Shown here: one piece after another, positions 61,370 to 64,000 of the stretch
How the letters are laid out: every line of letters starts with the position of its first letter
How positions within the stretch are numbered: position 1 is the first letter of the stretch
Source: Diplonema japonicum
Taxonomy: Eukaryota > Protista > Euglenozoa: Diplonemea
Direction of reading: 5' to 3'
Assembly (NCBI GenBank): GCA_964019335.1
Contig: OZ025739.1
Coordinates: forward strand, 335,133 to 399,132
Length of the DNA stretch: 64,000 bases
The notes under the pieces: generated by a model
Databases searched by the model: none
Told to the model about the DNA's origin: nothing
The model's input: only the letters and a program-made list of their open reading frames with translations
Program-made: the position numbers and the translations under genes

Positions 61370-61406
61370 CCAACGATTCTAAAGCTACAGTTTTTGTACT
61401 TTATTG
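61370..61406 (+). other. Spliced-leader exon copy 1 (first 2 nt missing, one substitution relative to copy 2)
   Basis: CCAACGATTCTAAAGCTACAGTTTTTGTACTTTATTG; ends in the euglenozoan SL core ACAGTTTCTGTACT(A/T)TATTG. Confidence 0.88.
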
Positions 61407-61909
61407 GTCGTTCGTGTTCCTGCTGGTGCCTGCCGCCTCTGCCTGGGTTTGCCGCTGCGTCCGTCGTCCGGGGGGGTTGTTTTGCCTGTCGGCCTGCCCG
61501 CCGCTTACCGAAGGGATCCCCTCCCCCCCAACACACACTTTTAAAAAAATAAAAAAATAAAACGGAACGCAAGAGGAGGTGACCATGCAAACCGCAGGGA
61601 GAAGGAACCCCGACAGGCCGCCAGGCTGCACACGACGCCTGGGCCGACCCAACCAGGTTGGGCAGTCTTATGAATCCCCACCCCCCAGCCCCAGATCCCC
61701 CCACCCCCCTTTAGAAAAAAAAAATAATAAAATAAAAAAATCACAAGTAGATTTTCTTTTGTGGTGATGTGTTTTTCCTGTTTTTGATTTTCTTCTTCCC
61801 CCGCTCTATGCTTTTTCGCATGGACATTGGTCACTCTGCCCCTTTCCCCTTTTTGATTTCTCCCTCTTTCCCCCTCCTAAATTTTACCCCCTGCCCCACT
61901 CGTTCCTCC
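61370..61909 (+). mobile_element. SL-headed repeat element, copy 1 (module A 61370-61750 plus module B 61752-61909)
   Basis: Collinear with 62287-62913; similarity begins exactly at the SL 5' end and the upstream flanks are unrelated. Confidence 0.7.
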
Positions 61910-62285
61910 GTTATCTGCGGAAGATGGGTGTTGAAGAGGTCGACCTGCAGTCAGCGGTGGTGACGGTCCCGGGGTTGTTCGAGGACGTCTCCTTTGAGAG
62001 GTACCTTGGGCTGTTGGCCCGGAAGAAGGAGGAAGACAGGGAGAGGCGGCCTGAGGTGGTTGCCACTGACCTCCCCACCCTGGAAGAGCTGAAGTGGAGC
62101 AAGAAGGACAAGAAGCGGGCCCGGGCCCGATCGGCCAGTACTGACTCGGATTGTGTGGAGGGTGGCTACATCTATCTGAAGGGTACGGGGGCGGATGGCA
62201 CCGTCCAGGCCAGATTGGAGGAGTGGGAGAAGGGAAATTACATGGCTCTCTGGAATAAGCTGGAATCAGGTGAGAAGGGGGAACC
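61910..62285 (+). mobile_element. Fragment of a CRE/SLACS-like non-LTR retrotransposon ORF
   Basis: ARLEEWEKGNYMALW fits the RLxxWxxGxxxxLW motif I recall upstream of the RT domain in CRE-like elements; the frame runs abruptly into the SL copy. Confidence 0.5.
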
Positions 62286-62324
62286 TACCAACGATTCTAA
62301 AGCTACAGTTTCTGTACTTTATTG
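62286..62324 (+). other. Spliced-leader exon copy 2 (39-nt span)
   Basis: TACCAACGATTCTAAAGCTACAGTTTCTGTACTTTATTG, against the diplonemid SL as I recall it: AACCAACGATTTAAAAGCTACAGTTTCTGTACTTTATTG. Confidence 0.92.
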
Positions 62325-62913
62325 GTCGTTCGTGTTCTGCTGGTGCCTGCCGCCTCTGCCTGGGTTTGCCGCTGCGTCCGTCGTCCGTCGTCGCCGTCGT
62401 CCGGGGGGGTTGTTTTGCCCGTCGGCCTGCCCGCCAACGAAAGGATCCCCCCATCACACACTATAAAACAAAAAAAAAAAATGGATCCAAGACGACTCGC
62501 AGGAGGAGGTGACCGCAGCCGCAGCCCGCAGGAGCAAGCCCGCAGCCAGCAGTGCACGGCACCGAGACCCACCCAACCAGGCAATCTGGTTGGGCAGTAT
62601 GAATCCCCACCCCCTAGATCCCCCCACCCCCCTTTAGAAAAAAAAATAATAAAAAAAAAATCACAAGCAGAGACCGCGGTTTTGACCGCCACAACCAAGG
62701 GAGCAGCAGCCCCTGCTACAGCCACGGCCGCCCCGGCCGCAAGCACGACTGCTGCAGCAGCCCCACTTCTTCCCCCGCTCTATGCTTTTTCGCATGGACA
62801 TTGGTCACTCTGCCCCTTTCCCCTTTTTTGATTCTCCCTCTTTCCCCCTCCTAAATTTTACCCCCTGCCCCACTCATTCCTCCCTAGTATGTTTTTGAAT
62901 TTGCCTCTTCTTC
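62287..62913 (+). mobile_element. SL-headed repeat element, copy 2 (module A 62287-62670, about 95 nt unique, module B 62766-62913)
   Basis: SL, about 155 nt of UTR-like sequence, an A-tract, ATG 62481 (MDPRRLAGGGDRSRSP...), then the pyrimidine-rich module B. Confidence 0.7.
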
Positions 62914-63155
62914 TTTTAAGCCTTTTTTGAGATTTTTATTTTTGAATTTTTATCATTTGGAGTTGCTTCTTCTTCTTCCCCTCTCCCTCCCATAAAGAAA
63001 AAGAGAAACCCATGCCTTCCTCGCAGGTTGGAACTTGATTGTCTGTTTTGGAATATTTTTATTTTCTCTTAAGATTTATCGTGCCTTGTGTGTCTTTTGA
63101 AGAAAAAAAAAAAAAAAAAAAACATTCTCAAGTCCCCCTTTTTAAAAAAAAAACC

Positions 63156-63396
63156 GTGGTCAAGGGCGTGGCGAGGGCGGCCATTAGGAAGGGGAAGGTT
63201 CTGGTGGAGAAGATGGAACTGGACTCGGAAGCGGAGCAGCACTCCCAGGAGGAGAGGAGGGAGCGGGAGGATCAGGAGGCGATGGAACGGGAAGCTGCGG
63301 CTACAGGAATGGAGGAGGAGGTAGCTGAGGCGGCGTTCTACCTGACAGGGATGGCTGCTCTGGCCGCGGCGAAGGCGGCGGAGAACAAGTTCCAGC
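63156..63396 (+). mobile_element. GC-rich truncated ORF fragment running into AAACCCGC repeats
   Basis: VVKGVARAAIRKGKVLVEKMELDSE...AAAKAAENKFQ; abrupt compositional boundaries; lies among the repeat modules. Confidence 0.4.
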
Positions 63397-63425
63397 AAAC
63401 CCGCAAACCCGCAAACCCGCAAACC
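63397..63425. repeat. (AAACCCGC)3 plus AAACC
   Basis: Seen directly. Confidence 0.95.
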
Positions 63426-63428
63426 GGG

Positions 63429-63647
63429 TTTTTTTTTTTTTTTTTTTTTTTTTTTTCTTTTTTCTTTTGTGGTGATGTGTTTTTCCTGTTTTTGATTTTC
63501 TTCTTCCCCCGCTCTATGCTTTTTCGCATGGACATTGGTCACTCTGCCCCTTTCCCCTTTTTTGATTCTCCCTCTTTCCCCCTCCTAAATTTTACCCCCT
63601 GCCCCACTCATTCCTCCCTAGTATGTTTTTGAATTTGCCTCTTCTTC
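63429..63647. repeat. Module B copy 3 with a T28 tract, embedded in AAACCCGC repeats
   Basis: Near-identical to 61752-61909 and 62766-62913 (..CCCCGCTCTATGCTTTTTCGCATGGACATTGGTCACTCTGCCCC..). Confidence 0.9.
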
Positions 63648-64000
63648 CGCAAACCCGCAAACCCGCAAACCCGCAAACCCGCAGACCCGCAAACCCGCAA
63701 ACCCGCAAACCCGCAAACCCGCAAACCCGCAAACCCGCCACAAACCCGCAAACCCGCAAACCCGCAAACCCGCAAACCCGCAAACCCGCAAACCCGCAAA
63801 CCCGCAAACCCGCAAACCCGCAAACCCGCAAACCCGCAAACCCGCAAACCCGCAAACCCGCAAACCCGCAAACCCGCAAACCCGCAAACCCGCAAACCCG
63901 CAAACCCGCAAACCCGCAAACCCGCAAACCCGCAAACCCGCAAACCCGCAAACCCGCAAACCCGCAAACCCGCAAACCCGCAAACCCGCAAACCCGCAAA
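63648..64000. repeat. Tandem array of the 8-nt unit AAACCCGC (TTTGCGGG on the - strand), about 44 units, running off the window end
   Basis: Seen directly; only two variant units (near 63684 and 63739). Confidence 0.97.

Follow-up and report, generated by a model that had tools for sequence, protein, structure and literature searches.

The window, a stretch of 64,000 nucleotides of Diplonema japonicum (contig OZ025739.1), ends at a chromosome end of this diplonemid. About its last 2.7 kb is a head-to-tail patchwork on one strand: between 61370 and 64000 there are at least eight same-strand fragments of a LINE family headed by the spliced leader (SL), and one piece of another repeat. The pieces align to L051, which was used as reference copy, and to L054, a long copy that bears a reverse transcriptase (RT) and carries the SL. 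The features are as follows.

61370-61406, plus strand: SL head 1, SL nt 3-39 with C>T at 61394 as the sole mismatch, abutting chromosome-unique DNA
61407-61751, plus strand: 5' leader of subfamily b, with 80% identity to the reference copy (84-86% to L023 and L025-L030)
61752-61909, plus strand: pyrimidine-rich 3'UTR piece (module B), L051 9063-9220, 96.8% identity
61914-62204, plus strand: C-terminal fragment of the long ORF, L051 8244-8535, 99.7% identity, out of order after the 3'UTR piece
62205-62286, plus strand: fragment of the RT ORF, 5' of the RT domain, 95% identical to L054 6814-6895 and 98.8% to L052, L003 and L029
62287-62324, plus strand: SL head 2, SL nt 2-39, exact
62325-62765, plus strand: 5' leader of subfamily a, L051 2655-3108, 96.8% identity
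62766-63100, plus strand: 3'UTR up to the 3' end of the element, L051 9103-9422 at 99.4% identity, then like L011 and L019
63101-63144, plus strand: tail of unit 2, A(21-22), CATTCTCAAGTCCCCCTTTTT, A(10)
63154-63392, plus strand: coding-like piece of another repeat family, ending where telomere repeats begin
63393-63425, plus strand: interstitial telomere repeat (CAAACCCG)x4, matching the published Diplonema telomere probe
63426-63647, plus strand: T-run and third module B copy of the 3'UTR, L051 9049-9250, 99.5% identity
63648-64000, plus strand: terminal telomere array (CCGCAAAC)n, up to the contig end

The SL 19-mer CAGTTTCTGTACTTTATTG has two sites in the window, 61388-61406 (one mismatch) and 62306-62324 (exact), where shuffled sequences are expected to give none. 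The first-pass annotation had described two near-complete genomic SL copies without their first one or two nucleotides, and both (61370-61406 and 62287-62324) are real, copy 1 being without SL nt 1 and nt 2 and copy 2 without nt 1. Regions 61370-61419 and 62288-62337 are 98% alike, the shared repeat beginning with CCAACG. As that annotation had noted, the flanks 5' of the two copies are unrelated and GTCGTTCGTG lies 3' of each; the window 5' of 61366 gave no match in any family locus compared. GTATG, which it had given as the donor of most introns here, is the published donor consensus of the species (PMC12621601). The long T-run is absent for about 100 nt past the SL, where there is only a T4 run. 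In unit 1 the first 100 nt of the leader contain no adenine, and in unit 2 an adenine-free stretch of 111 nt is followed by the A-tract and by a short ORF from the ATG at 62483. The A-tract, the ATG and the pyrimidine-rich module B had all been described from the sequence and were found again; module B occurs at 61752-61909, 62766-62883 and 63460-63617, and its joint differs between the two copies as claimed (L051 coordinates 9063 and 9103).

Each "SL exon" is the 5' end of one broken copy of a LINE of about 9.5 kb. In unit 1 (61370-61909) the head is fused to a 3'UTR piece and two out-of-order ORF fragments come after it. The counterparts of 62205-62286 in L054, L052, L003 and L029 continue with ...CCTAAGAACGACGAGG and not with the SL. 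Unit 2 (62287-63144) kept both its SL head and its poly(A), and lost about 8.6 kb between 62765 and 62766; the CATTCTCAAGTCCCCCTTTTT in its tail is a single unit of a short repeat, which other copies carry in several iterations. Neither window copy contains RT. The repeat family of the piece at 63154-63392 has 14 places in the genome, some of them internal. The breakpoint at L051 8244 is recurrent, and a splice-acceptor origin was considered for it and rejected, as homology begins at ATCTGCGG and not after AG.

The master of this family is a LINE of about 9.5 kb which consists of SL nt 2-39, a leader with 100-115 nt free of adenine, AlkB, OTU, RT, a CCHC/endonuclease-like region, a pyrimidine-rich 3'UTR and poly(A). 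Pfam assigned AlkB (PF13532, 1e-14) and OTU (PF02338, 1.4e-12), and RVT_1 was found in L054 (4.6e-17) and L052 (1.3e-16), as in LINE-type RTs. The best named relative was "SLACS 132 kDa protein [Diplonema papillatum]" (44% identity, E 1.3e-157). Thus an RT and endonuclease-like ORF between the 5' leader (module A) and the 3'UTR (module B), which the first-pass annotation had proposed to look for, does exist, and AlkB and OTU accompany it.

The best solved structures found by sequence were R2 proteins, and the best fold match was also R2 (8gh6_A, E 2.6e-17; model pLDDT 81, more than 900 columns aligned over the whole protein). In an alignment of 33 homologues the CCHC, RH, E and RPAD motifs (C801, C806, H817, C821, R828-H829, E850 and R861-P862-A863-D864) show conservation of 90% or more. 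A sequence search with the endonuclease region alone gave no match among solved structures, and past residue 850 the model of this region is of low confidence. No APE domain was reported by Pfam. From its predicted protein the master is probably a non-LTR element of the restriction-like-endonuclease (RLE; R2/CRE/SLACS) kind, with a putative endonuclease that is assigned from the motifs and the fold of the whole protein.

The family has at least 49 places in the genome (40 of 235 candidate places scored), and nearly all of them are no more than 17 kb from a contig end and direct the sense strand toward it. Of 22 minus-strand places, 21 are this close to the contig start; plus-strand places on contigs whose length is known number 11, and each is found in the last 12 kb of its contig. 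Internal copies are few (C20, C30, C64). Among eight contig ends sampled, seven terminate in (CCCGCAAA)n, which is the published Diplonema telomere probe sequence, and heads, 3'UTR pieces and telomere repeats recur at all eight. In L004 and L053 a poly(A) tail, A(14) within a range of A(13-21), is directly joined to CCCGCAAA repeats. A 3' tail abutting the target together with variable 5' junctions is the pattern of an RLE-type LINE, and copies that are confined to ends, in one orientation and joined to telomere repeats are the pattern of a telomere-targeted retrotransposon. The telomere duplex is (TTTGCGGG)n/(CCCGCAAA)n, and the sense strand of the element and the C-rich telomere strand both run 5' to 3' toward the physical end, so that the 3' end appears to belong to the C-rich strand. 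Such a polarity cannot come from simple priming off a 3' overhang at the terminus, which is a point against the main reading.

The genome has 232 SL sites, and 5' ends were compared in 34 non-redundant heads. These have no flanking sequence in common; 26 of the 34 retain SL nt 2, and nt 1 is effectively random. The heads stop at SL nt 2-3, preceded by a variable nucleotide. According to published work, RT leaves the first A of the SL uncopied in Diplonema, and heads ending at nt 2-3 fit this failure. Chained heads and partial heads were seen; the form SL+TTTCTGTACTTTATTG+GTCG, in which an SL is joined after the CAG inside an encoded SL, was found in three different families. The SL/GTCG joint lies on more than 30 contigs of the genome and is crossed by contigs of several independent runs, two of them RNA-seq-like. 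The nt 2-3 stops and these RNA-like contigs give indirect support to a putative SL-capped element RNA. Most likely the SL now belongs to the DNA of the element and is inherited with it, full-length RNAs beginning at its first nucleotide or close by, and occasional read-through RNAs are most likely trans-spliced again at the AG inside the encoded SL.

We infer that the copies come from reverse transcription in which the G-rich telomere strand served for priming; RT would have continued up to the hypermodified 5' terminus of an RNA bearing the SL, and nt 1 would be absent because RT stops there. The mosaics may have arisen from template jumps or from later deletions. The first-pass annotation had viewed both units as retro-copies of an RNA starting with the SL, placed outside the SL-RNA genes and internally deleted, and the comparison with the long master agrees with this. 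Internal deletion applies to both units, but unit 1 is not a simple deletion as out-of-order fragments follow it. Very probably, then, this part of the window is a patchwork of dead fragments of a telomeric, SL-headed RLE-type LINE family of about 9.5 kb.

How the patchwork was assembled can also be read another way, namely as a DNA-level product of once-complete elements, by deletion, unequal exchange or break-induced copying, and not of RT template switching. Blocks are common to several ends at 96-100% identity, and in the DNA run telomere repeats are fused to the element at many different positions (joints to 63395), which is expected for erosion and healing; MoTeR arrays of Magnaporthe show such behaviour (PMC7367193). 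Short chained heads (SL+6 nt+SL, SL+15 nt+SL and repeated AACCAACGATTCTAAA(A)n) are on the other hand typical of RT end-jumping. We consider a purely DNA-level origin possible but not probable, and the two processes are not mutually exclusive.

The encoded SL could instead be re-added in each generation by trans-splicing of transcripts from one or a few SL-less masters with an AG acceptor, the SL-headed copies being dead ends. Trans-splicing onto element RNA does occur, as seen in the SL+TTTCTG... heads of three families, and the heads never erode past nt 2-3. Ordinary environmental mRNAs also read SL/GTCGT, so the GT needs no special origin; a metagenome scan for SL+GTCGT returned three such SL-trans-spliced environmental euglenozoan mRNAs and no relatives of the element. 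Against this, the leader-start copies scored (40 of 235 candidates) all had the SL, with query start at 1-3 in 33 of 33 rows and one exception whose SL is mutated. The first-pass annotation had anticipated a master in which an AG acceptor stands where the SL is, and none was seen among these candidates; the long master has the SL, and so has the RT-bearing long copy L054. Re-addition in each generation is accordingly quite unlikely, and an SL inherited in the DNA of the element is preferred.

The first-pass annotation had compared the two units with RIME and NARTc, and a mobilised family of non-autonomous deletion copies, of which MoTeR2 is another example, was considered. Unit 2 has the layout of such families, with the SL head at one end, poly(A) at the other and an internal loss in between. 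But no second instance of the joint 61751/61752 or of 62765/62766 was found (40 of 112 and 40 of 152 candidates scored), and the other genome places among the scored candidates match just one side of either joint. Since the deletion joints are unique in the genome as far as these candidates show, the units are one-off dead mosaics and not a propagating RIME/NARTc-like family, and the proposal is left unsupported and very improbable.

Whether the window heads are simply orphan SL-RNA genes or pseudogenes, with GTCGTTCGTG... as the SL-RNA intron, depends on the real gene. The best SL-RNA gene candidate reads SL+GTACCCAATCTG and has nine copies. Two pairs of this class, on C15 and C59, are 361-362 bp from 5S rRNA genes, and two unlinked copies share exactly the SL and about 85-93 nt and then diverge. 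Linkage of SL-RNA and 5S rRNA genes is classical in euglenozoans. The first-pass annotation had stated that its reading would fall if the real SL RNA continued like the window heads; the candidate gene continues with GTACCCAATCTG and not with GTCGTTCGTG. SL-RNA gene candidates are located away from the element copies.

Two properties of the heads do recall SL-RNA genes. A GT is directly 3' of the SL, as at the SL-RNA donor site, and conservation is highest over roughly the first 110 nt, a length close to that of an SL RNA, with pairwise identity of 0.97-0.995 versus 0.83-0.93 beyond. But it is the SL+GTACCCAATCTG class that has the properties of real genes (shared short unit, nine copies, 5S linkage), whereas homology past GTCGTTCGTG spans kilobases into the AlkB, OTU and RT ORFs, and GTCGTTCGTG heads have no common upstream sequence and no nearby 5S gene. 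Folding of the head RNA was no better than that of shuffles (z = 0.34 and 0.38 for copy 2, 1.63 for copy 1). None of 4227 Rfam families matched at the heads or at the gene candidate, and as even the candidate is without a match, Rfam cannot decide the identity of the SL RNA here. Two further ideas were rejected. A pairing of SL nt 4-10 with GTCGTTCG gives five perfect base pairs and is lost in a sister family; the hairpin-type heads SL+GTATCGACCGTGCCAATAAAG, considered as the true SL-RNA intron, belong to LINEs scattered in the genome and have T-rich flanks that are unrelated, and it is the GTACCC class that is linked to 5S genes. It is barely plausible that the window heads are orphan genes.

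An assembly artefact, with cDNA- or RNA-derived reads chimerically joined at the contig end, would account for the uniqueness of both deletion joints but is hardly conceivable, as the assembly was made from PacBio HiFi and Hi-C data (PMC13598402), the SL/GTCG joint recurs across the genome and in contigs of other studies' runs, and the same architecture is present at all eight sampled ends.

We found no published description of leader-headed elements of this kind. A close likeness is with MoTeR1 and MoTeR2 of Magnaporthe oryzae (PMC7367193), which share a SLACS/CRE-like RT with the element described here and have a restriction-like endonuclease region, comparable to the putative one here. They are also embedded in telomeres, in head-to-tail arrays of one orientation with many truncated copies and interstitial telomere tracts, include a short derivative with both ends of the long element, and have a sense strand continuous with the C-rich telomere strand. 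The 5' end of MoTeR consists of telomere-like repeats and faces the chromosome end, whereas here it is an SL head and centromere-proximal. Unlike MoTeR, the Diplonema element has a poly(A) tail, AlkB and OTU, and its short forms are one-off and not a MoTeR2-like family.

CRE1, CRE2, SLACS and CZAR of trypanosomatids and NeSL-1 of nematodes belong to the same broad RT/endonuclease group and are also associated with the SL. Their insertion sites are SL-RNA genes, whose SL exon they split, while the target here is the telomere repeat. A CRE-type insertion in an SL exon is not what is found, as the whole of SL nt 2-39 precedes the element and nothing SL-like is 3' of it. HeT-A, TART and TAHRE of Drosophila and TRAS and SART of Bombyx are LINEs limited to chromosome ends in one orientation, as here, and TRAS and SART in addition insert in the telomere repeat with abutting poly(A). 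These elements differ in being APE-type or endonuclease-less and without SL, and the Drosophila 5' ends point outward.

Within the Euglenozoa, ingi and L1Tc with RIME and NARTc (PMC1874656, PMC8190864) are LINEs with a conserved 5' module, as in this family. Their Pr77 is an internal Pol II promoter bound by transcription factors of SL-RNA genes, and its transcripts are unspliced (PMC1874656, PMC8190864); it is a precedent for a self-starting 5' head, yet it is not the SL. RIME and NARTc are true multi-copy deletion families, and the window units are not. In the relict SLs of retroposed dinoflagellate genes a DNA-encoded SL is likewise the mark of sequence that was once an RNA with SL and was reverse-transcribed. 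For Diplonema papillatum, Valach et al. attributed SL fragments dispersed in their hundreds to retrotransposon activity (PMC10161547 supplement). Those relicts and fragments are by-products on cellular mRNAs or mere fragments, whereas here the SL heads the retrotransposon itself.

A wider reading takes the encoded SL as a working part of the element. Transcription would start under the control of the head itself, made up of the SL and the conserved leader free of adenine and of AG; the cap-4 machinery would recognise this head, and the element RNA would gain a genuine SL-type 5' end without trans-splicing. As the leader would offer no branch point or acceptor, the SL of the cell could not decapitate the element RNA. 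AlkB would strip base methylations from the hypermodified leader, which might allow RT to copy the SL nearly to its end. All chromosome ends in this species would then consist mainly of such elements and the telomere repeat. We regard the combined reading as speculative and rather unlikely as a whole.

The window itself holds dead fragments only, and the interest is in the family. For annotation, the analysis gives an SL-RNA gene candidate with 5S linkage and the make-up of chromosome ends in D. japonicum, and SL-like matches in diplonemid genomes should be taken mostly as retroelement heads and not as genes. In hosts that trans-splice all their mRNAs a retrotransposon needs a translatable, SL-capped RNA and yet a complete 5' end to pass on, and this family appears to solve the problem through a leader carried in its own DNA. 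It may thus be a testable case of a mobile element copying an RNA-processing signal of its host, and it suggests what the unusual AlkB and OTU domains might be for.

The window has two matches to the 3'-terminal 19 nt of the kinetoplastid/diplonemid spliced leader (SL), one at 61388-61406 with a single mismatch and an exact one at 62306-62324; no match is expected in shuffles. The two SL heads aligned in register starting at CCAACG, and 61370-61419 was 98% identical with 62288-62337. Both continue directly 3' of the SL with GTCGTTCGTG, and their 5' flanks are dissimilar, as the first-pass annotation had described. The A-tract, the ATG (62483) and the shared pyrimidine-rich 3'UTR piece (module B; 61752-61909, 62766-62883 and 63460-63617) which it reported were also found. 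The mapped pieces at the window end all lie on the same strand.

Features of the window end. L051 is the reference copy for element coordinates and L054 a long copy bearing the reverse transcriptase (RT).
61370-61751, plus strand: head of a divergent subfamily, 80% identity to L051
61752-61909, plus strand: 3'UTR piece, corresponding to L051 9063-9220
61914-62204, plus strand: C-terminal ORF piece, L051 8244-8535, 99.7%
62205-62286, plus strand: RT ORF piece, L054 6814-6895
62287-62765, plus strand: head of the main subfamily, 96.8%
62766-63144, plus strand: 3'UTR end, A(21-22), one 21-nt unit, A(10)
63154-63392, plus strand: piece of another repeat, 14 places in the genome
63393-63425, plus strand: four telomere octamers
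63426-63647, plus strand: T-run and third 3'UTR piece
63648-64000, plus strand: terminal telomere array

Family matches were absent 5' of 61366, so the first head abuts chromosome-unique DNA directly. At the start of the second SL, other copies of the preceding fragment continue ...GGGGGAACCTAAGAACGACGAGG, therefore two pieces of the element are fused at this joint, overlapping by 1-2 nt at most. In unit 2 (62287-63144) the two natural ends are still present, and about 8.6 kb between them is lost. The piece at 63154-63392 is a glutamate-rich, coding-like fragment from a different repeat; a spacing of 10,320 bp separates two of its places on contig C31 and points to a further long element in tandem.

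The genome searched comprised 62.5 Mb in 132 contigs, with the window as the final 64 kb of contig C92. The published assembly of Diplonema japonicum YPF1604 is 62.3 Mb, from HiFi and Hi-C data (PMC13598402), and the published intron donor consensus of this species is (G)/GTATG (PMC12621601). With the 385-nt unit 62286-62670 as probe, at least 49 genomic places were identified. On the minus strand, 21 of 22 places were less than 17 kb from the first base of the contig, and on the plus strand all 11 places on the seven contigs with known length were less than 12 kb from the last base; internal copies were few (C20, C30, C64). It means that the sense strand is almost always directed to the chromosome end. 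Module B alone matched with 100% identity at no fewer than 35 places, nearly all a few kb from contig ends.

The window closes with (CCGCAAAC)n, as do seven of the eight contig ends examined, and the published telomere probe of Diplonema papillatum is CAAACCCGCAAACCCGCAAACCCGCA (PMC10161547 supplement), so the window ends at a telomere. At every end read (window 63648-64000; C79, C84, C62, C113, C102 and C108, loci L051-L058), the C-rich strand (CCCGCAAA)n points 5'>3' outward to the physical end, which puts the 5' end on the G-rich strand. Telomeres made by telomerase have the reverse polarity. The terminal arrays were short (65-425 bp).

The first-pass annotation had predicted an RT-bearing master copy, and L054 (C38:573560 onward) is such a copy. 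It has the same SL head (97.6% identical) and continues through an AlkB-type 2OG-Fe(II) oxygenase (PF13532, 1e-14), an OTU protease (PF02338, 1.4e-12) and a reverse transcriptase (RVT_1, 4.6e-17). Its post-RT region showed 38% identity to the sister element on C24, a 10.66-kb tandem array with OTU and RVT_1 domains. Across 33 aligned homologues, conservation was at least 90% for a CCHC knuckle and for the residues RH, E and RPAD. The same motif set is reported for the restriction-like endonuclease of R2/CRE-type elements (Yang, Malik and Eickbush 1999), and the region is a putative endonuclease. R2 proteins were the closest solved structures by sequence (1.1e-7) and also by fold (model pLDDT 81; 8gh6_A, E 2.6e-17, >900 columns aligned). 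The element is about 9.5 kb when L054 is joined to the 3' part of L051; L051 and L052 represent this element too, with parts lost internally. At its 3' end the element reads ...TTTTGAAG and then A(13-21). These A's directly adjoin CCCGCAAA repeats in two copies (L004, L053), and other copies have, after the first A-run, a 26-nt unit in iterated form and a second A-run. The 26-nt unit, ATTTATTTTCTCAAGTCCCCCTTTTT, is flanked by the two A-runs in 1-4 iterations (L011, L012, L019, L058; window 63123-63143).

Unit 1 (61370-61909) and unit 2 had been proposed as a family of non-autonomous derivatives. Probes across 61751|61752 and 62765|62766 matched fully in the window only, with one-sided matches at all other places (40 of 112 and 40 of 152 candidates scored for the two probes), so this proposal was rejected; the two units are one-off mosaics.

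The 19-mer had 232 genomic places, with many unrelated sequences downstream. One class, SL+GTACCCAATCTG..., had nine copies. Two unlinked members (L035:357-490; L038, minus strand) share an identical SL and the about 85-93 nt after it, up to and including a hairpin, and are completely different on either side. Two tandem pairs of this class, at C15:779068 and 779420 (locus C15:778588-779440) and at C59:512403 and 512749 (locus C59:511924-512770), have copies 346-352 bp apart, and a distance of 361-362 bp separates the pairs from 5S rRNA genes encoded on the other strand (C15:778588-778706; C59:511924-512042). Linkage of SL and 5S is a known euglenozoan pattern, and the SL RNA of D. papillatum is 39 + 75 nt (PMC10161547). 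The real SL-RNA gene is likely SL+GTACCCAATCTGATCC..., reaching about 85-93 nt past the exon with a 3' hairpin. The heads in the window are therefore not SL-RNA genes, an alternative which the first-pass annotation tied to a real SL RNA continuing with GTCGTTCGTG: the gene-like, 5S-linked class continues with GTACCCAATCTG.

The 5S rRNA genes are dispersed (22 matches, no array). Downstream of genomic SLs there were at least eight unrelated sequence classes (L032-L050, L060-L089), six of which begin with GT. Two SL classes have a hairpin complementary to the SL 3' end (CTTTATTGG...CCAATAAAG) and are located behind T-runs. At L045 (C17:633373) the SL is followed by just 12 nt (GTAGGGAAGGCT) and about 40 A's, and this locus may be a DNA copy of a very short polyadenylated SL-bearing RNA.

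Homology started at SL nucleotide 2 in 26 of 34 non-redundant heads and otherwise at nucleotide 3, with C, T, G and A in similar numbers at position 1. Valach et al. reported that RNA-seq consistently lacks the first A at the 5' end of the Diplonema SL, and attributed this to a cap-4-type modification; the genomic heads stop at the same point, which supports their derivation from RNA 5' ends. Chained heads (SL+GTCGTT+SL, SL+15 nt+SL, SL+CCCT+SL) and the repeated AACCAACGATTCTAAA(A)n preceding the L051 head resemble end-to-end template jumps. SL+TTTCTGTACTTTATTG+element heads occur in the window's family (L009, L021), the C24 family (L043) and a hairpin-type family (L071), and their second part starts exactly after CAG inside the encoded SL. 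Because the same two boundaries appear in three independent families, these heads are best explained as read-through RNA trans-spliced at the AG of the encoded SL and then retrotransposed. The old heads L020 and L021 have CG>TG changes in the SL (CAACGATT>CAATGATT) and the leader (GTCGTTCGTG>GTTGTTTGTG), a pattern like CpG decay.

In sequencing runs X7 and X3 the depth of the SL-holding bin exceeded that of adjacent bins roughly 30-fold to several hundred-fold, and in X1 it exceeded that of the next bin about 2.6-fold; judged by depth, X7 and X3 would be RNA-seq-like and X1 DNA-like. Contigs spanning the SL|GTCG joint came from X3 (record 20) and from X7 (record 27), the latter with 295 other letters 5' of the joint. 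X1 had many different element positions joined to a telomere-repeat start (joints to 63395), consistent with other chromosome ends having undergone either erosion and healing or internal priming.

Among described systems, MoTeR1/MoTeR2 of Magnaporthe comes nearest, with SLACS/CRE-like RT and restriction-like endonuclease, head-to-tail arrays within telomere repeats, truncated copies and a short form with both ends common (PMC7367193). In both systems the sense strand is continuous with the C-rich telomere strand, but MoTeR 5' ends point outward whereas the D. japonicum element has its 3' ends outward, the whole arrangement being inverted. The SL head, poly(A) tail, AlkB and OTU domains also set the D. 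japonicum element apart. CRE, SLACS and CZAR insert into SL genes, and the SL is not part of these elements. In dinoflagellates, SL relics are known from retrogenes in the genome. In D. papillatum, SL relics were described as 'hundreds of fragments' and attributed to retrotransposon activity (PMC10161547). In our literature search, no description was found of SL-headed retrotransposons, of LINEs with AlkB or OTU, or of telomeric elements from diplonemids. Three JGI metagenome/metatranscriptome contigs (L090-L092) begin within the SL and go on through a short 5'UTR to a long ORF; they were rejected as ordinary trans-spliced mRNAs of uncultured euglenozoans, beginning GTCGT by chance.

The first-pass annotation expected a master with an AG acceptor in place of the SL. 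Among the 40 of 235 candidates scored, no SL-less master with an acceptor site was found, and every copy with the start of the leader (the 5' stretch after the SL) also had the SL, including RT-bearing L054. Re-splicing of an SL-encoding transcript could not regenerate a single exact SL, since the exon ends with TTG and not AG; the partial SL duplications expected from re-splicing were seen in a minority of heads only. So we infer that the element now inherits its SL as DNA, with full-length RNAs beginning on the first SL nucleotide or close to it. Conservation is highest in the SL and the 74 nt after it (pairwise identity 0.995 and 0.97, versus 0.83-0.93 beyond). Adenine, and hence AG, is absent from 94-115 nt after the SL in both window copies, L054 and the C24 family (L031), two element families differing by about 25%; the window overall has 27% A, versus 0 in 61407-61506 and 62325-62435. 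The conserved SL plus 74 nt and the adenine-free stretch are compatible with a functional head.
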